Below, one piece after another: positions 50,101 to 64,000 of a stretch of DNA of 64,000 bases. A program made the position numbers and the translations under genes. The stretch's first letter is position 1; each line of letters opens with the position of its first letter. The DNA lies in the NCBI GenBank assembly GCA_964035545.1, contig CAXIUT010000230.1, positions 992,001 to 1,056,000 of the forward strand, in the 5' to 3' direction. The notes under the pieces were generated by a model, which saw nothing but the letters and a program-made list of their open reading frames with translations, had not been told where the DNA came from and ran no database searches. The stretch comes from Bugula neritina (taxonomy: Eukaryota > Animalia > Bryozoa).

Positions 50101-50455
50101 CTGCAACATACTGCAACATACTGCAACATACTGAAATACACTACAACATACTGCAAGATACCGCAACCTACTGAAATACACTGAAACATATTGAAATACA
50201 CTGCATCATACTGCAACATACTGAATTACACTGGAACATATTGAAATACACTGCGACACATTGAAACATACTGCAACATACTGAAATATACTGCAAGATA
50301 CTGCAACATACTGAAACAGACTGTGACATACTGAAATACACTGCAACATACTGCAAGATACCGCAACCTACTGAAATACGCTGAAACATATTGAAATACA
50401 CTGCATTATACTGCAACATACTGAATTACACTGGAACATATTGATATACACTGCA

Positions 50456-50457
50456 AC
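50456..50457 (+). other. 2-bp target-site duplication AC (second copy at 55885-55886)
   Basis: ...CTGCA[AC] insert [AC]ACATTGAAAT, versus the empty site GCA[AC]ACATTGAAAT at 63491-63505. Confidence 0.8.
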
Positions 50458-50479
50458 CACAGCATAGTTAAGGTCATCC
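50458..50479 (+). repeat. Left terminal inverted repeat (22 bp)
   Basis: CACAGCATAGTTAAGGTCATCC, matching the reverse complement of 55863-55884 at 19/22 positions. Confidence 0.88.
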
Positions 50480-52031
50480 CCAGTGAAATATCATCTCATA
50501 ATCTAGTCTCAGTTCCTAGTTGCTATTGCTCTGTGGGCGGCATGCGTATTGCCTACTTGTCATAATTTAGCATGAGATATAACAATTGCCAACAGACCAT
50601 GAAATTAGCTAGGGCTGCACCTGTTTGCATTACAACCATTGCTACAATCTATTGAGCAAGTATGTGGTCATGGCAAGCCTCAGCATCACCTCATTATTAT
50701 TATTACAAGAGACCAGTGGTTTGTTTCATGTGCAATGTACTTGATGTACAAAGGAAGATAATTTTTGTAACTTCTTTTTCAACTAACCATGTAAAACTCT
50801 TTCAGATTCTGGAAGCAAGCTAAATGCTAAAGCTAACTCAATATTTATCCATTTGCCTAGTCTAATAAAGTTGTTAATAATTACAGGCTTGACTACAACT
50901 TGACAAATAATTTAGAGATGCTCTTCTCTCAAAGCATACTGTTTTTATGCTAGACTAATAATCTATCTGTTCACTACCATTGACTAACTTAAAGCCAAAA
51001 TTACCTTCATCATTAAAATCCTCTTCTAGTTGCAAAAACACTTTTCATTGCTAAACTATTACAATCAGTTACAGACTCTGCACAATAGCTTAGAATAGTA
51101 AAGAGACTTGCATATAGGTCAGATAGTCATGTGTGAGATTTTGTTGGTAGCTGTAATGATCAGATATGCAGAATTTTGTGTGGCCACTTTGAGTTTAGAT
51201 GGTTTTGGTAAAGGATTTGATTGCTGCAAGTTTCTAATATAGCTAGTAGGTACTTTTGTGGTCCCATTGTACATTATTATAAGCATTAATCAACACTTAT
51301 TGAAGTGAGTTGGAACTTGGAACTATATAATAGGTTAGACTGTGAGCCTGTGCTTTAAATATATTCTATTCGCTCTCTGCTGTATACAGTCTAAACTTTA
51401 AAAGGTCCAATCAACCTTAAATTGCTTCTAGCTAAATGTCCAAAAATTGGCTATGAGCTGTATCTTGTTGCCTTGCACTGAGAAATAAATTTGAGGCCAG
51501 CAAACAACTGGGCTCCTTTGTACTCCTGGCAGCTACGATCAATAGTTGGTTATCATAGCTGCGCAGTGTTCACTCAAGCATGATATCATCGGCTTGCTGT
51601 ATACCAACTCAGAGCCAAGATTATCAACTATTTTATGTTTCTAAATTTAGCATCTAATAGAAAAAGCTGCGTCTAGTTAGACTGACTGACGCTATGCTTG
51701 CCTGAGTGAAACACCCAAGATGAACAGTTTTAATCTTAGCTAGGCAAGAATTGAGAATTTGAAGAGAAAATCTCCTTAAGATAAAAGAAGATGTCCAGTG
51801 AATTCAGTTTTGTTTCCGGCCTGATAGGTGTCAGTTAATCAGCTCAGATATAACTAGCAATGCATTTTCCATTATTCTGATGCTGCAATTATAATATTCC
51901 ATAACAATAATTGACTTAATAATTTAGGAATATGCAACAAATCAACCAGTTTTATTCAAGTTAACACCAGATAGCCATTGCTAAAGATCAAAACGAAAAT
52001 CAGTGTGGATTTTCAAACATAATATAATATA

Positions 52032-52038
<7 letters not shown>

Positions 52039-52108
<70 letters not shown>
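52039..52108. repeat. (TA)35 microsatellite inside the insert
   Basis: Uninterrupted TA run of about 70 bp, preceded by an imperfect AT-rich run from about 52020. Confidence 0.97.
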
Positions 52109-52110
<2 letters not shown>

Positions 52111-55100
52111 CCTACACGTATGATCAGGCATAGAAGTAGCAAGTTCAATAAATAATGCAAACATGCAGAAGGTGTAACAGCTGTGTACTTTTGTGAAGGA
52201 ATAAGTCACGGCTTTTTTATAGCAATACATCCTATAAGTATCTTACAAACATGGGGGAAATAATATGTTAGTTCTCTAATTACTTTTCTTAAACATACAT
52301 TACAATATTGAATGTCAAAACCAATTTTGTAAAAAAGCAGAATCTATAAAAATTCAAGCTGCAAAAGCCTAACTAAAAGGCACATTGCTCGGGTGATTAG
52401 TCCTGTCAATTATTAATAATTTTAGTTTTTATATCCGTTGATAAAGTGTCCTATTTTTGCAGGTAGGGTCTTGATATATAGGTGTCAGTTGTAGAGTATT
52501 ATGCTTTTTAAACATAAAAATATATCGTCTTGCAAGAGTAGAGAATCTAAAAATCCTAAGAGCTGATGCTGAGCACACATGCTATAGCATTTCTTTGACA
52601 AAACCTAATCATCTAGTAGCCCACTTGTTTTTGGAACTCAATCTAAAAATATAAATAGCAGTTTTCTCAATACATTGAAAAGTAATTTGCAACATTTTGA
52701 ATTTGAATTAAATTGTTCATACACCACAGTTAGTACTATAGAGTAGGCTAATCTATATTCTGTAAAATCTACCTATACTGTAATCAGATCAAAGCTGCCA
52801 GCTGATAACTTTTTAAAAAACACAGCTCATAATTACAATTACTATTAGGTTGGATGCTCCCTTGAAATTGTATTTTTTAAATAATTTTTTAGTAGATATG
52901 ATTGTCGTGATGACTCCAATTCTTTTGAAACATATGCTTATAATGTATTTTAAGTTGGTCACTCACAGTAAATGTAGTTTGGTATGCAAGTAGTAGTACA
53001 ATTAGAGTTACTAAACAGAAGATTTTTAGTGCAAAACTATATTTTCTATGTGCCTACTCAACTACAGTACTCTAAATAATTGGAGAAAAAAGTGAGTCAA
53101 TAATAAATTTGGCCATTTTTCTTACATAATGATGAAATGAACTCTGACAATTTTGATCTAGTCTTACAGTCTTAGTAATAGTTCTACCATCAATGCATTC
53201 TTATTATACTATGCCTTTTTTATGAATATAAAACTCAATTTTGAAGTTTAGTTATACTGTGCAATGCTATAATAATAATAACAATATGAATATGAATATA
53301 ATATTAATAATAGATATAATACGCAGTATAGGTCTACTGTAATACTAATAGTAATAGTACAACTATACAAATCTTATAAAATTAATTAAAAATAAATATA
53401 TTATTGCTTGAAAGCAATATGAAATATGCGAATTTGCTGAAGGAAGCAGTGGTACTCACTTACCCTTGAAGTTAAACTCTTAAAGTTAATCAAAGTACAC
53501 TCTTTCATCCTAGGTTTGAGAGGTAAAAGACGTTTTTCACTCCATTTTGAAATGATATTCCCACCGCCAGTTGGCAAGTTCACTTCACAGATTGCGTTTT
53601 AACATCGAATTTTTTATTTACCGAGCTAGCTTTTACTAGTAACATATCCAATCGGGCTAGATGAGTAACGCTTACAGCTACGTATGATATTATGCAGAGC
53701 AGTTTGTTTGAGGACAGTGCACTGCAGCTGCGGAATTACTGGGGTAGGTTTTGGGGGGGTGAATGTGAATTATAAACGTTCTATGTGCTTTTTTGAAAGC
53801 ATTATGATAGCATACGCTTTAGTCATTTATATGTAAAATAAAACTTATTGTTTTATAAATTATAATTTACTTATTTATTTATTTTACTATTGTTTTAAAA
53901 ACTTGATAAAACTTTGAACACCCCCTCATAATACCACAACCGCACTCCACTCCTTTAGTTATAACCTAATTAGATTAGAAGTCACATCTTCAATACAAAC
54001 AAGCTATTCCGATGTCTGCTGCTGGCATTAGCTTGAAACTGCAGTGAAGCTTTTATAACTGAGCTAGTAGGCTGAAAGTGCACTACCTATAGTTAGCTAC
54101 CAATGTTATGAATTGGTGTAAGCAGTAAAGGAAATGAGTAGTATATATGTGTACAGAAACTTGTACTCAAATGCTTATAGAACCCCATCGTTACGGTTAT
54201 TTGAGATTCAATCAGGTCCAAAAGAAATTGTGAAATTAAATACCCATTTATATTACATCATGCTGAATCTGGTCACAGAATTGGCTATTTAAAGCTAATT
54301 GTAATTAAAACCATATTGCAATATAAAATAACCTGCCTGAGTTGCTCCTTATTGACGAGTAGTCTAGTTGGGCATTTAAGTTCAAACCATGAGCTCATTT
54401 CAGCTAAAAATAGCAGCACCTTGTCACTGCCTATGAATGGCTTGCATGCATGGTCACTGCCAGAGCCATTAGCAAAATGGCTTACTGCTACATACAAGCC
54501 TGCTACATACCAGCCTCCTACGTGCAAGAACTATTTATCAATCAGAAACTACTTATTTAATTGTAAGCTACCAGAATTTTAATACCATAATATTATAAAA
54601 AAAAAGTTGCCTGGTAGGTGCGATATAAGCAGAAAAGCTAAAACAGCCTAAATTCTTAAAAATTTTTAAGAAATTCTAATTTGGTAACATGTCGGAATTC
54701 TCTCTAAATTTCTTAAGCTGCATCTCACCGCCTGTAATAGGCCCAATAATCTGAAATGCAGGGTTTAATTTCTCAATACCCTCATCACTGCACATACCTC
54801 ATACTTATTATACTTAGCTGATAAGACTTTACTACTATTGTTGAAAGAAAGTTATGCAATTACTATTCAATTGACTAAAAATTTTCTCCAACAATTTTGT
54901 AGATTCTGAAAACAAAGTTAATGTTTTAAAATAACAATACAGTGAGTTTGGTTACAGATATATTATTAGTATAATTTAGATTACTCTACAGAACAACAAA
55001 TTTGCATTGAAATCACACACAAAAGGCATAAAATTTAGTGGCCTTAACTCTCACTAGCATCCTAAGATGTCTGGGTTATCATACAGACTGTATTACTAAA

Positions 55101-55535
55101 CTGCTTTGCACTAAAAAGAAACAAGTCAAAGCAAGAAATGTACGCAGGCTTCAGAAACCGCTTCATATAAATACAACTGAAATCAAGATTCAGGTTAGAT
55201 TGCGCATTGTACAGCCTCGCGTCTATAGGCAGTACAACAATATTGCAACCACCAAGATTCCAACTACTAGCTACTAAAATAATATAATAACCAGCCTCAT
55301 ACCGCCTTTTACCCATACCACAGTTTACTGCAGAGATGAACTTTAACCCTTTGGTTTAGCGCGCACAACATGAATCGTAGGCCGCATGAGCTCCCTGTAA
55401 TCATTATGATGGCTACAATGCAGCGCAGCTCTACCGTGTTCAACCAAGCGTGCAGACTAAGCGATATGTAAAATTTTTAATAAAATCAGTGTATAAATTA
55501 CACGTTTACACCAATTCTATTGAGGTTATCTGAAA

Positions 55536-55814
55536 ACTTTAAAAAGCCTCTAATACACAAATATCTTATAACACTATATTCCAATTTTTGCAGAGATATG
55601 TTGCTTGGGAATTGAATAATTCGTGGGGCACTGAGACCATGTTTTTTTATGCGAAAATGGGCAATTTTTGACTGTTTTTGGAGCATAAAAATGCAACGGG
55701 TTGGGTAGGTAAAGACTTTAAAAAAGCCTCTAATAGAGCAGCAAAATATTTACAAGATGGTTTTTGAATTTTGATTCTAGCCTCAAAATTAGTCGAGTTA
55801 TGAGTGGGGCACTG
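55536..55814 (+). repeat. Degenerate ~180-bp subterminal direct repeat at the right end of the insert
   Basis: ACTTTAAAAA(A)GCCTCTAATA at 55536 and 55715; GTGGGGCACTG at 55623 and 55804. Offsets are 179-181 bp. Confidence 0.7.
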
Positions 55815-55862
55815 TTTCATATATGATTATAATGGAGCAATGAAATTACTGATTCAGTAGAA

Positions 55863-55884
55863 GGATGACCTTAATCAAGCTGTG
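55863..55884 (-). repeat. Right terminal inverted repeat (22 bp)
   Basis: GGATGACCTTAATCAAGCTGTG on the + strand; reverse complement CACAGCTTGATTAAGGTCATCC. Confidence 0.88.
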
Positions 55885-58800
55885 ACACATTGAAATATAC
55901 TGCAACATACTGAAATACACTATAACATATTGAAATATACTGCAACATACTGAATTACACTCTAACATACTGAAATACGCTGTAGCATACTGAAATACAC
56001 TGCAACACACTGAAGTATACTGTAATACACTGAAATGTAATGCAAAATACTGAATTATACTGCAACATAGTGCAACATACTGAAATACACTACAACAAAC
56101 TGCAACATACTGAAATACACTGGAACATATTGAAATACACTGCGACACATTGAAACATACTGCAACATACTGAAATATACTGCAAGATACTGCAACATAC
56201 TGAAACAGACTGTGACATACTGAAATACACTGCAACATACTGCAAGATACCGCAACCGACTGAAATACACTGTAACATATTGAAATACACTGCATCATAC
56301 TGCAACATACTGAATTACACTGGAACATATTGATATACACTGCAACACATTGAAATATACTGCAACACACTGAAACATACGGCAATATACCAAAATATAC
56401 TGCGACACCTTGAAAAATACTGCAACATACAAAATATACTGCAAGTGGTGCAACATGCTGAAATACAATGTGACACACTGGAATACACTGCAACATACTG
56501 CAAGATACTGCAACGTACGGAAATACAGTGTAACTTATTGAATTACACTGCATCATACTGCAACATACTGAGATACACTGGAACATATTGATATACACTG
56601 CAACACATTGAAATATACTGCGACACACTGAACCATATGACAACATACCGAAATTTACTGCGACACACTGAAAAATTTTGCAACATACGAATTATACTTC
56701 AAGTGGTGCAACATTCTGAAATACAATGTGACACACTGAAATACACTGCAACATACTGCAACATACTGCAACATACTGAAATATTGTGCGACACAGTGAA
56801 ATATACTGCAACATATTGAAATATACTGTAACATACTGCAACATACTAAAATACACTGCAACATACTGAAATACATTGCAACACATTAAAATATACTGCG
56901 ACATACTGAAACATACTGCAACATGCTGAAATATACTGCAACATACTGAAATACACTATAACATATTGAAATATACTGCAACATACTGAATTACACTCTA
57001 ACATACTGAAATATGCTGTAGCATACTGAAAAACACTGCAACACACTGAAGTATACTGTAATACACTGAAATGTAATGCAACATACTGAATTATACTGCA
57101 TCATAGTGCAACATACTGAAATACACTGTGACACACTGAAATACACTGAAACATAATGCAACAAACTGCAACATACTGAAATACACTGTAACATATCGAA
57201 ATACACTGCAACATACTGCAACATACTGCAACATACTGAAATACACTACAACATACTGCAACATACTGAAATACACTGGGACATATTGAAATACACTGCG
57301 ACACATTGAAACATACTGCAACATACTGAAATATACTGCAGGATACTGAATTACACTGGAACATATTGATATACACTGCAACACATTGAAATATACTGCA
57401 ACACACTGAAACATACGGCAATATACCAAAATATACTGCGACACCTTGAAAAATACTGCAACATACGAAATATACTGCAAATGGTGCAACATACTGAAAT
57501 ACAATGTGACACACTGGAATACACTGCAACATACTGCAACATACTGCAACATACTGAAATACACTGTAACATATTGAATTACACTGCATCATACTGCAAC
57601 ATACTGAAAAACACTGGAACATATTGATATACACTGCAACTCATTGAAATATACTGCAACACACTGCAACATACGGCAGCATACCGAAATATACTGCGAC
57701 ACCTTGAAAAATACTGCAACATACTGAAATATACTGCAAGTGTGGCAACATACTGAAATACACTGTGACATACTGAATTACACTGCATCATACTGCAACA
57801 TACTGATATACACTGGAACATATTGATATACACTGCAACACATTGAAATATACTGCAACACACTGAACCATATGACAACATACCGAAATTTACTGCGACA
57901 CACTGAAAAATTTTGCAACATACGAATTATACTTCAAGTGGTGCAACATTCTGAAATACAATGTGACACACTGAAATACACTGCAACATACTGCAACATA
58001 CTGCAACATACTGAAATATTGTGCGACACAGTGAAATATACTGCAACATATTGAAATATACTGTAACATACTGCAACATACTAAAATACACTGCAACATA
58101 CTGAAATACATTGCAACACATTAAAATATACTGCGACATACTGAAACATACTGCAACATGCTGAAATATACTGCAACATACTGAAATACACTATAACATA
58201 TTGAAATATACTGCAACATACTGAATTACACTCTAACATACTGAAATATGCTGTAGCATACTGAAATACACTGCAACACACTGAAGTATACTGTAATACA
58301 CTGAAATGTAATGCAACATACTGAATTATACTGCAACATAGTGCAACATACTGAAATACACTGTGACACACTGAAATACACTGAAACATAATGCAACAAA
58401 CTGCAACATACTGAAATACACTGTAACATATCGAAATACACTGCAACATACTGCAACATACTGCAACATACTGAAATACACTACAACATACTGCAACATA
58501 CTGAAATACACTGGGACATATTGAAATACACTGCGACACATTGAAACATACTGCAACATACTGAAATATACTGCAAGTGTGGCAACATACTGAAATACAC
58601 TGCAACACACTGAAGTATACTGTAATACACTGAAATGTAATGCAAAATACTGAATTATACTGCAACATAGTGCAACATACTGAAATACACTACAACAAAC
58701 TGCAACATACTGAAATACACTGGAACATATTGAAATACACTGCGACACATTGAAACATACTGCAACATACTGAAATATACTGCAAGATACTGCAACATAC

Positions 58801-61800
58801 TGAAACAGACTGTGACATACTGAAATACACTGCAACATACTGCAAGACACCGCAACCGACTGAAATACACTGTAACATATTGAAATACACTGCATCATAC
58901 TGCAACATACTGAATTACACTGGAACATATTGATATACACTGCAACACATTGAAATATACTGCAACACACTGAAACATACGGCAATATACCAAAATATAC
59001 TGCGACACCTTGAAAAATACTGCAACATACAAAATATACTGCAAGTGGTGCAACATACTGAAATACAATGTGACACACTGGAATACACTGCAACATACTG
59101 CAACATACTGCAACATACTGCAACATACTGAAATACACTGTAACATATTGAATTACACTGCATCATACTGCAACATACTGAAAAACACTGGAACATATTG
59201 ATATACACTGCAACTCATTGAAATATACTGCAACACACTGCAACATACGGCAGCATACCGAAATATACTGCGACACCTTGAAAAATACTGCAACATACTG
59301 AAATATACTGCAAGTGTGGCAACATACTGAAATACACTGCAACACACTGAAGTATACTGTAATACACTGAAATGTAATGCAAAATACTGAATTATACTGC
59401 AACATAGTGCAACATACTGAAATACACTACAACAAACTGCAACATACTGAAATACACTGGAACATATTGAAATACACTGCGACACATTGAAACATACTGC
59501 AACATACTGAAATATACTGCAAGATACTGCAACATACTGAAACAGACTGTGACATACTGAAATACACTGCAACATACTGCAAGATACCGCAACCGACTGA
59601 AATACACTGTAACATATTGAAATACACTGCATCATACTGCAACATACTGAATTACACTGGAACATATTGATATACACTGCAACACATTGAAATATACTGC
59701 AACACACTGAAACATACGGCAATATACCAAAATATACTGCGACACCTTGAAAAATACTGCAACATACAAAATATACTGCAAGTGGTTCAACATACTGAAA
59801 TACAATGTGACACACTGGAATACACTGCAACATACTGCAAGATACTGCAACGTACGGAAATATTGTGCGACACAGTGAAATATACTGCAACATATTGAAA
59901 TATACTGTAACATACTGCAACATACTAAAATACACTGCAACATACTGAAATACATTGCAACACATTAAAATATACTGCGACATACTGAAACATACTGCAA
60001 CATGCTGAAATACACTGCAACATACTGAAATACACTATAACATATTGAAATATACTGCAACATACTGAATTACACTCTAACATACTGAAATATGCTGTAG
60101 CATACTGAAAAACACTGCAACACACTGAAGTATACTGTAATACACTGAAATGTAATGCAACATACTGAATTATACTGCATCATAGTGCAACATACTGAAA
60201 TACACTGTGACACACTGAAATACACTGAAACATAATGCAACAAACTGCAACATACTGAAATACACTGTAACATATCGAAATACACTGCAACATACTGCAA
60301 CATACTGCAACATACTGAAATACACTACAACATACTGCAACATACTGAAATACACTGGGACATATTGAAATACACTGCGACACATTGAAACATACTGCAA
60401 CATAGTGAAATATACTGCAACATACTGAATTACACTCTAACATACTGAAATATGCTGTAGCATACTGAAATACACTGCAACACACTGAAGTATACTGTAA
60501 TACACTGAAATGTAATGCAACATACTGAATTATACTGCAACATAGTGCAACATACTGAAATACACTGTGACACACTGAAATACACTGAAACATAATGCAA
60601 CATACTGCAACATACTGAAATACACTGTAACATATCGAAATACACTGCAACATACTGCAACATACTGCAACATACTGAAATACACTACAACATACTGCAA
60701 CATACTGAAATACACTGGGACATATTGAAATACACTGCGACACATTGAAACATACTGCAACATACTGAAATATACTGCAACACACTGAAACATACGGCAA
60801 CATACCGAAATAAACTGCGACACGTTGAAAATTACTGCAACATACTGAAATATACTGCAAGTGGTGCAACATACTGAAATACACTGTGACACACTGAAAT
60901 ACACTGCAACATACTGCAACATACTGCAACATACTGAAATATTGTGCGACACAATAAAATATACTGCAACATATTGAAATATACTGTAACATACTGCAAC
61001 ATACTAAAATACACTGCAACACATTAAAATATACTGCAACATACTGAAACATACTGCAACATACTGAAATACACTGTGACACCCTGAAATACACTGCAAC
61101 ATACTGTAACATACTGCAACATACTGAATTACACTGGAACATATTGATATACACTGCAACACATTGAAATATACTGCAACACACTGAACCATATGGCAAC
61201 ATACCGAAATTTACTGCGACACACTGAAAAATACTGCAACATACGAATTATACTTCAAGTGGTGCAACATACTGAAATACAATGTGACACACTGAAATAC
61301 ACTGCATCATACTGCAACATACTGCAACATACTGAAATATTGTGCGACACATTGAAATATACTGCAACGTATTGAAATATACTGTAACATACTGCAACAT
61401 ACTAAAATACACTGCAACATACTGAAATACATTGCAACACATTAAAATATATTGCGACATACTGAAACATACTGCAACATGCTGAAATATACTGCAACAT
61501 ACTGAAATACACTATCACATATTGAAATATACTGCAACATACTGAATTACACTCTAACATACTGAAATATGCTATAGCATACTGAAATACACTGCAACAC
61601 ACTGAAGTATACTGTAATACACTGAAATGTAATGCAAAATACTGAATTAGACTGCAACATAGTGCAACATACTGAAAGACACTACAACATACTGCAACAT
61701 ACTGAAATACACTGGAACATATTGAAATACACTGCGACACATTGAAACATACTGCAACATACTGAAATATACTGCAAGATACTGCAAACATACTGAAACA

Positions 61801-64000
61801 GACTGTGACATACTGAAATACACTGCAACATACTGCAAGATACCGCAACCGACTGAAATACACTGTAACATATTGAAATACACTGCATCATACTGCAACA
61901 TACTGAATTACACTGGAACATATTGATATACACTGCAACACATTGAAATATACTGCAACACACTGAAACATACGGCAATATACCAAAATATACTGCGACA
62001 CCTTGAAAAATACTGCAACATACAAAATATACTGCAAGTGGTGCAACATACTGAAATACAATGTGACACACTGGAATACACTGCAACATACTGCAAGATA
62101 CTGCAACGTACGGAAATACAGTGTAACTTATTGAATTACAGTGCATCATACTGCAACATACTGAGATACACTGGAACATATTGATATACACTGCAACACA
62201 TTGAAATATACTGCAACCCACTGAACCATATGACAACATACCGAAATTTACTGCGACACACTGAAAAACTTTGCAACATACGAATTATACTTCAAGTGGT
62301 GCAACATTCTGAAATACAATGTGACACACTGAAATACACTGCAACATACTGCAACATACTGCAACATACTGAAATGTTGTGCGACACATTGAAATATACT
62401 GCAACATATTGAAATATACTGTAACATACTGCAACATACTAAAATACACTGCAACATACTGAAATACATTGCAACACATTAAAATATACTGCGACATACT
62501 GAAACATACTGCAACACGCTGAAATATACTGCAACATACTGAAATACACTATAACATATTGAAATATACTGCAACATACTGAATTACACTCTAACATACT
62601 GAAATATGCTGTAGCATACTGAAATACACTGCAACACACTGAAGTATACTGTAATACACTGAAATGTAATGCAACATACTGAATTATACTGCAACATAGT
62701 GCAACATACTGAAATACACTGTGACACACTGAAATACACTGAAACATAATGCAACATACTGCAACATACTGAAATACACTGTAACATATCGAAATACACT
62801 GCAACATACTGCAACATACTGCAACATACTGAAATACACTACAACATACTGCAACATACTGAAATACACTGGAACATATTGAAATACACTGCGACACATT
62901 GAAACATACTGCAACATACTGAAATATACTGCAAGATACTGCAACATACTGAAACAGACTGTGACATACTGAAATACACTGCAACATGCTGCAAGATACC
63001 GCAACCTACTGAAATACACTGAAACATATTGAAATACACTGCATCATACTGCAACATACTGAATTACACTGGAGCATATTGATATACACTGCAACACATT
63101 GAAATATACTGCAACATACTGAAATACACTATAACATATTGAAACATAATGCAACATACTGCAACATACTGAAATACACTGTAACATATCGAAATACACT
63201 GCAACATACTGCAACATACTGCAACATACTGAAATACACTACAACATACTGCAACATACTGAAATACACTGGAACATATTGAAATACACTGCGACACATT
63301 GAAACATACTGCAACATACTGAAATATACTGCAAGATACTGCAACATACTGAAACAGACTGTGACATACTGAAATACACTGCAACATACTGCAAGATACC
63401 GCAACCTACTGAAATACGCTGAAACATATTGAAATACACTGCATCATACTGCAACATACTGAATTACACTGGAACATATTGATATACACTGCAACACATT
63501 GAAATATACTGCAACATACTGAAATACACTATAACATATTGAAATATACTGCAACATACTGAATTACACTCTAACATACTGAAATACGCTGCAGCATACT
63601 GAAATACACTGCAACACACTGAAGTATACTGTAATACACTGAAATGTAAAGCAAAATACTGAATTATACTGCAACATAGTGCAACATACTGAAATACACT
63701 ACAACATACTGAAATACACTGGAACATATTGAAATACACTGCGACACATTGAAACATACTGCAGCATACTGAAATATACTGCAAGATACTGCAACATACT
63801 GAAACAGACTGTGACATACTGAAATACACTGCAACATACTGCAAGATACCGCAACCGACTGAAATACACTGTAACATATTGAAATACACTGCATCATACT
63901 GCAACATACTGAATTACACTGGAACATATTGATATACACTGCAACACATTGAAATATACTGCAACACACTGAAACATACGGCAATATACCGAAATTTACT
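55885..64000. repeat. Same 10-bp satellite array, right arm; runs off the window end
   Basis: Same monomers, variants and orientation. It resumes in register directly after the insert (ACACATTGAAATATACTGCAAC...). Confidence 0.98.
56700..60400. repeat. Further ~1.2 copies of the 3079-bp HOR right of the insert
   Basis: ORFs 56846/59925 and 56991/60070 are offset by 3079, with the same variant order as in the 30-50 kb domain. Confidence 0.85.

Follow-up and report, generated by a model that had tools for sequence, protein, structure and literature searches.

A geneless 5.4-kb transposon with CACAGC termini, cleanly inserted in satellite DNA

Introduction

The window analysed here, a stretch of 64,000 bp, is satellite DNA throughout except for one insert of about 5.4 kb. 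The locus raises the questions of what the insert is, how it came to lie in the satellite, and to which group of mobile elements it belongs. An earlier note on this DNA had proposed a non-autonomous element of the CMC/EnSpm type. We find that the insert is a cleanly inserted cut-and-paste transposon with no gene of its own, and we consider below what its ends, its interior and its insertion site indicate about its origin.

Results

The satellite, built on a 10/20-bp unit, covers positions 1–50457 and 55885–64000 of the window, and strand skew and composition change only at 50–56 kb, in agreement with the description of the insert as the sole non-satellite DNA in the 64 kb. The commonest satellite 24-mer had no match in prokaryote genomes. 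A paralogous empty site lies in the same satellite at 63386–63605 (plus strand). When the flanks of the insert are joined with one AC, they align to this region without gaps at 218 of 220 positions, whereas joining them with both ACs, or with none, lowers the best match to 67–72%. The paralogy with the empty-site region is patchy (93–100% identity) and extends at least 2.4 kb leftward and at least 0.5 kb rightward. Because excision of the insert together with one AC restores the 218/220 match, the event is a true transposition accompanied by a 2-bp target-site duplication (TSD). The left AC occupies 50456–50457 and the right AC 55885–55886, the latter established by reading the flank and by comparison with the empty site, which holds a single AC. 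Both the AC duplication and the restoration of the satellite register on excision had been put forward in the earlier note, and the uninterrupted paralogue bears out each of them. The coordinates given there, 50456–55886, enclosed a real insert but took in both AC copies; the element proper spans 50458–55884 on the plus strand (5,427 bp, 33% G+C).

The element is bounded by terminal inverted repeats (TIRs) of 22 bp. The left end, 50458–50479 on the plus strand, is CACAGCATAGTTAAGGTCATCC, and the right end, 55863–55884, is the reverse complement of CACAGCTTGATTAAGGTCATCC; read inwards, the left TIR is CACAGC-ATAG-TTAAGGTCATCC and the right TIR, on the minus strand, is CACAGC-TTGA-TTAAGGTCATCC. 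The two agree at 19 of 22 positions, with all three mismatches confined to positions 7–10, giving a bipartite layout of 6 invariant, 4 variable and 12 invariant nucleotides. For fixed positions, at least 19 matches in 22 have a chance probability of about 1.8e-8. Shuffling the window never yielded a match to the TIR pair, and, a (TA)n run aside, the insert contains no other 22-nt inverted pair of such quality; these results substantiate the 19/22 repeats first reported. Past the 22 nt the left and right ends have no similarity, and the terminal 500 bp show no enrichment of any 8–10-mer. Next to the right end, on its inner side, a unit of about 180 bp is imperfectly duplicated in tandem (55524–55880, plus strand; copies at 55524–55700 and 55703–55880).

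The coding capacity of the element was assessed in several ways. ORF lengths do not exceed those of shuffled sequences, whether read with the standard code or with a ciliate code of the TGA-only type, and a Pfam search with the 20 longest reading frames of the element returned no match. Exact look-up of ten element ORFs in the protein collection found none of them present, and word-based protein searches with frames of 97 and 83 aa gave no match. A 1,038-aa tandem-repeat product (P0002) gave 14 weak stretches against a two-sequence profile and was treated as spurious. Searches of the element for tRNA genes, Rfam families and B-boxes found nothing real, the mir-297 matches being merely the (TA)n microsatellite at 52022–52108 in the AT-rich middle of the element. 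Self-comparison of the element revealed no nested TIR pair. The comparison of ORF lengths with shuffles and the Pfam result on the longest frames uphold the absence of coding capacity, and together with the precise empty site and the TIRs they support the insertion of a non-autonomous transposon, as had been suggested.

Part of the interior has a separate origin. The segment 53597–55196, designated module R, is a copy of a dispersed repeat distinct from the element, colinear with positions 1215–2839 of contig L032 (75–83% identity) and in part with positions 232–1136 of contig L031, both from one JGI metagenome. It is bracketed on the plus strand by exact copies of the 8-nt direct repeat AGATTGCG at 53589–53596 and 55197–55204; the 8-mer occurs nowhere else in the window, and that number of matches is attained in 3 of 100 shuffles. 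The borders of module R carry this direct repeat and no inverted ends. The one frame common to the element and L031 has 11, 12 and 20 mismatches at the three codon positions (chi-square p ~ 0.18), which is no significant codon-position bias. In L032, module R adjoins a gag-like ORF that is GC-rich, carries a CCHC zinc knuckle and terminates at TAG. The element is composite: it has either captured a 1.6-kb dispersed-repeat copy or received one by nested insertion. The interior had been called unexplained; module R now accounts for roughly 30% of it, and the remainder is unique non-coding DNA.

Other copies of the element were sought with the terminal pattern CACAGCNNNNTTAAGGTCATCC and with the element itself, later searches of the collections using the element outside 53856–53897. 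Metagenome contigs contained 23 single matches of the pattern, which showed no similarity outside it in blastn with the element and were attributed to chance; the 7 single matches in bacterial genomes were likewise judged chance, and viral contigs contained no match. Of the words of the element, 57% occur in one sequencing run, X1, the only run to contain a large part of it. Since the remaining runs from the organism contain only 6–8%, about what is expected from 324 satellite letters alone, the family appears to be low-copy, strain-limited or poorly assembled.

By its ends the element resembles the CACTA/EnSpm group, and it does not appear to be a new type. CACAGC starts at 50458 and GCTGTG ends at 55884, giving CAC...GTG termini like those of CMC elements, and the duplicated AC falls within the short TSDs of that group, which measure 2–4 bp and, in animal CACTA and Mirage, 2 bp. 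Mirage elements have a 2-bp target duplication, which they share with the present element together with CA/CAC-type ends; Mirage is, however, defined by its transposase, which this element does not carry. ENS1_Cis of Ciona savignyi, an animal CACTA element, and the MITEs CMC-NA_1 and CMC-NA_2, known from parasitoid wasps and their polydnaviruses, likewise combine 5'-CAC/GTG-3' ends with a 2-bp TSD; this group, too, includes non-autonomous derivatives lacking a transposase, and transposition is again evidenced by a paralogous empty site (PMC6004678). The taking of CAC...GTG termini with a 2-bp TSD as CMC-type hallmarks agrees with this published animal pattern. At 5.4 kb the present element is not MITE-sized, and its TIRs were compared with those of these elements as far as CAC. 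More broadly, the CMCT clade, including Mirage, has 5'-CA..TG-3' ends and TSDs of 2–5 bp (PMC12730594).

Several other groups fit less well. Tc1/mariner/pogo elements duplicate TA and hAT elements 8 bp; the whole element here is flanked by a duplication of 2 bp, AC, and both groups were rejected. Transib elements make 5-bp duplications, and the related RAG recombination signal heptamer is CACAGTG. The element end likewise opens with CACAG; the flanks GCAAC and ACACA differ, however, with only 2 bp duplicated rather than 5, and Transib was also set aside. Plant CACTA elements (En/Spm, Tam1) have a 3-bp duplication and subterminal repeat arrays; the present element has a 2-bp duplication and no subterminal motif arrays, and is not of the plant type. 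A length of 5.4 kb without a gene is nothing unusual among non-autonomous DNA transposons, as the CACTA derivatives of plants and animals illustrate, and the remark that the element is unusually long for one with no coding capacity was overstated. Plant CACTA and Chapaev elements resemble it in having CAC...GTG ends and large non-autonomous derivatives carrying captured or nested DNA, but they terminate in CACTA rather than CACAG and have TSDs of 3 bp or, in Chapaev, 3–4 bp (PMC4079192) rather than 2.

Discussion

The combination of CAC...GTG ends with a 2-bp duplication points to the CMC group, as animal CACTA/EnSpm or Mirage, an affiliation drawn here from six terminal bases and the duplication length in a group that is itself defined by its transposase. 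The element is a non-autonomous class II TIR transposon that moved by cut-and-paste in a fairly recent jump, and we consider it probable that it belongs to the CMC elements of animal type. Counting against this assignment are the missing subterminal motifs, which classic plant CACTA elements possess, the lack of likeness between the ends past 22 nt, the yield of nothing but chance matches to the end pattern in the metagenome, viral and prokaryote collections, and the small share of the element present in runs other than X1. By this account, a DDE transposase supplied by another locus of the genome would bind the element ends, probably at the invariant inner 12-mer TTAAGGTCATCC, and cut at the CAC/GTG tips. 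The element would then be joined to target DNA whose strands are cut 2 nt apart, and repair of this stagger would yield the AC duplication.

The alternative that fares best, which we hold to be possible but clearly less probable, assigns the non-autonomous TIR transposon to some other lineage, described or not, that makes 2-bp duplications, be it another CMCT branch, an ISL2EU/Harbinger-like element or one linked to the KDZ type. The narrow basis of the class assignment, six terminal bases and a duplication length, leaves room for such a lineage, as do the lack of subterminal repeats and a 6+4+12 TIR layout that was not matched to a described family. The lineages that might be named nevertheless differ from the element: Kyakuja-Dileera-Zisupton (KDZ) elements, which we exclude, have duplications of 7–8 bp against the 2 bp found here; Plavaka elements have 2-bp duplications but end in TGT..ACA or CATCA..TGATG; and ESTA and PHISTA are restricted to TA targets, where this copy has AC (PMC12730594). 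CAC/GTG ends with 2 bp, by contrast, are exactly the published pattern of animal CACTA (PMC6004678).

It is unlikely, though worth weighing, that the insert is germline-limited DNA of a peritrich ciliate, that is, a micronuclear transposon or eliminated sequence in a micronuclear satellite under a ciliate code. The satellite does recur in 'symbiont metagenome' runs from a second study, as such an origin might predict, but the lack of an ORF excess in the element under the TGA-only code speaks against it, and the TAG that closes the CCHC gag-like ORF beside module R in L032 is a better fit to an animal host. The literature searched gave no description of a CMC-type element in peritrich ciliates. 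With still less confidence, we note that mobilisation of the family may depend on a transposase lineage undescribed for ends of this kind, with a bipartite 6+12-nt TIR, a TTAAGG core and a 2-bp duplication free of sequence preference; it could represent a new CMCT branch or peritrich germline-limited DNA.

Another reading takes its cue from the TTAAGG found 10 nt in from either end; from its TTAA inwards, 12 bases are perfectly inverted. The working ends might then be the inner TTAA-GG...CC-TTAA, of piggyBac or Kolobok type, with the outermost 10 bases at either end being carried-over flank. In piggyBac and Kolobok, however, the duplicated TTAA target lies immediately outside the element ends, and the empty-site paralogue has neither the TTAA nor the outer 10 bases, so the inserted unit ends at CACAGC/GCTGTG; we regard this reading as very improbable. 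That the insert arose as an assembly chimera, or as foreign DNA ligated into the satellite during repair, is hardly credible, since a misjoin would produce neither 19/22 inverted ends exactly at both borders with a 2-bp duplication nor a return to register with a 99%-identical paralogue. What speaks for it is that most of the element's words occur in one run, X1, which may be the source sample.

The preferred assignment, a non-autonomous CMC-type transposon, makes this locus in most respects a matter of routine repeat annotation: a non-autonomous DNA transposon that contains another repeat and lies in a satellite. Greater significance would attach to it only if its autonomous partner turned out to encode a transposase of a new lineage, or its host turned out to be the peritrich ciliate. 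The exact ends defined here allow annotators to collect the family and to seek that partner, and the 99%-identical empty paralogue beside a precise insertion shows that this genome recently harboured an active transposase that cuts with a 2-bp stagger.

An element precisely inserted in a satellite array

The window consists of a single satellite array (1-50457 and 55885-64000) with a base unit of 10 bp, best described as a 20-bp dimer, and its sole interruption lies at about 50.4-55.9 kb. The array has a G+C content of 34% and a strong, uniform strand skew (GC about -0.27, AT about +0.30). The mutual likeness of its units is just 65-73%, and patchy blocks of 93-100% identity, spaced 7.6-13 kb, point to recent segmental duplication or conversion within the array. 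Long open reading frames in the satellite (e.g. 266 aa at 55846-56646, minus strand) were rejected as genes, being artefacts of the stop-free repeat.

The interruption is a 5,427-bp insert (50458-55884), flanked by AC on each side (50456-50457 and 55885-55886). The left flank up to 50457 reads ...ACTGCAAC, and the right flank from 55885 reads ACACATTG.... The 5' 22 bases of the insert, CACAGCATAGTTAAGGTCATCC, match the reverse complement of its 3' 22 bases, CACAGCTTGATTAAGGTCATCC, at 19 of 22 positions. Since all three mismatches fall within positions 7-10, the terminal inverted repeat (TIR) is bipartite, with two invariant blocks, of 6 and 12 positions, separated by 4 variable ones. Given the base composition of the insert, the chance of at least 19 matches of 22 at fixed positions is about 1.8e-8, and no second inverted 22-mer pair as good was found in the insert, the (TA)n run aside. 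With up to three mismatches allowed, the end pattern occurs at two places in the window, both of them insert ends, and at none in shuffled sequences. The two ends share no similarity past 22 nt, and neither subterminal motif arrays nor nested inverted-repeat pairs were found inside the element. Immediately interior to the right end, a stretch of about 180 bp is imperfectly duplicated in tandem.

For an empty-site comparison, 110 nt of the left flank and 110 nt of the right flank were joined in three versions, each of which was compared with every position of the remaining window. Joined with a single AC, the flanks gave an ungapped match of 218/220 to 63386-63605; joined with both ACs or without AC, their best match anywhere was 67-72%. 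As the match appears only when a single AC is kept, the target-site duplication (TSD) is exactly 2 bp (AC). Within 200 nt on either side of the site, likeness to this paralogue is 99-100%; farther out, allowing for a few 10-nt indels, it becomes patchy (93-100%) and extends at least 2.4 kb to the left and at least 0.5 kb to the right, where it reaches the window end. The satellite block that holds the site was therefore duplicated recently, and one of its copies is filled and the other empty. An earlier note had described a TIR element with an AC duplication cleanly inserted in the satellite; the 19/22 ends and the 218/220 empty site bear this out, and the insertion is precise, with inverted ends and a 2-bp duplication.

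Comparison with known transposon groups

The element resembles animal CACTA (ENS1_Cis) and CMC-NA MITEs, which have 5'-CAC/GTG-3' ends and a 2-bp TSD (PMC6004678). Chapaev elements have 5'-CAC/GTG-3' ends and a TSD of 3-4 bp (PMC4079192), and the CMCT clade as a whole has 5'-CA..TG-3' ends and a TSD of 2-5 bp (PMC12730594). The same source gives 7-8 bp for KDZ elements, 2 bp with different termini for Plavaka, and TA only for ESTA and PHISTA (PMC12730594). On these terminal features, animal-type CACTA/EnSpm or Mirage is therefore the best fit and the probable affiliation, membership being defined by the transposase. Other groups each differ from the insert in a defining feature: the TSD is 5 bp in Transib and 8 bp in hAT, against 2 bp here, and is TA in Tc1/mariner, against AC here, while the TTAA that stands outside the ends of piggyBac and Kolobok elements is not found outside those of the insert. 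Inner TTAA motifs as the working ends are argued against by the empty site, which lacks both TTAA and the outer 10 bases.

Coding and RNA content of the element

With the standard code the longest frame in the element spans 125 codons, and with TGA as sole stop it spans 320; in neither case is there an excess in length over block-shuffled controls. A Pfam search with the 20 longest stop-to-stop frames gave no match below E = 0.05. These results uphold the proposal that the element is without coding capacity. Searches of the element for tRNAs and other RNAs (ARAGORN, Rfam and a B-box pattern) found nothing; two Rfam mir-297 rows corresponded to the (TA)44 run at 52022-52108.

A dispersed repeat within the element

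A word-based protein search with a chance frame (54205-54579) retrieved one 80-aa product (P0001) from JGI metagenome 3300002729, and a two-sequence profile built from the chance frame and P0001 retrieved a second product (P0003) from the same metagenome. Fourteen weak stretches of P0002, a 1,038-aa tandem-repeat product with a unit of about 76 aa, also matched this profile and are probably spurious.

The element was then compared at the DNA level with the contigs that carry P0001 and P0003, L031 and L032, omitting 53856-53897. Positions 53590-55199 of the window align colinearly with L032:1215-2839, identity being 83% across 270 nt and 75% across 1,257 nt; similarity to L031:232-1136 is confined to 53957-54006 and ~54322-54766. 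The shared segment of about 1.6 kb (53597-55196), here termed module R, occurs in contigs whose remainder is unrelated to the element, and is therefore one copy of a dispersed repeat that exists independently of the element. The CACAGC end is absent from L032. An exact 8-nt direct repeat, AGATTGCG, brackets module R (53589-53596 and 55197-55204) and occurs nowhere else in the 64 kb. Either nested insertion, with 8 bp duplicated, or microhomology-mediated capture would fit this arrangement. Module R lacks inverted ends, and neither Pfam nor Rfam gave a match to it. In the frame shared with L031, mismatches by codon position are 11/12/20, a bias that is not significant, so module R is probably non-coding. 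The element's interior, previously considered unexplained, is thus accounted for over about 1.6 kb.

L032 begins with a GC-rich, gag-like frame (L032:2-484), which terminates at a TAG. The frame lies 0.7 kb from module R and contains a CCHC zinc knuckle of borderline score (20.7 bits, Pfam cut-off 20.8). This suggests that the metagenome's eukaryote harbours retrotransposons and reads the standard code; with such a standard-code frame beside module R, an animal host would fit better than a peritrich ciliate. Separately, and as a weak lead, the atlas look-alikes of the frame are eukaryotic, with some clusters mostly molluscan.

Copies and proposed mode of insertion

In metagenome, viral and prokaryote collections, the end pattern gave chance single matches only. 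Of the words sampled from 50300-56050, 57% were present in one sequencing run (X1). Seven further runs, belonging to the study of X1 or to a 'symbiont metagenome' study of 2016, contained 6-8%, roughly the fraction that the 324 satellite letters make up in that interval. This pattern may reflect presence/absence polymorphism or low coverage. The results are compatible with an element that is low-copy or sample-limited, the contigs showing presence, not absence.

In analogy to the established behaviour of cut-and-paste transposons, we propose that a DDE transposase, supplied in trans, would bind the element ends, excise the element at its CAC/GTG tips and insert it at a target whose strands are cut 2 nt apart. 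Taken as a whole, the element is a genuine TIR transposon of recent insertion, non-autonomous and composite, whose ends are CMC-like.
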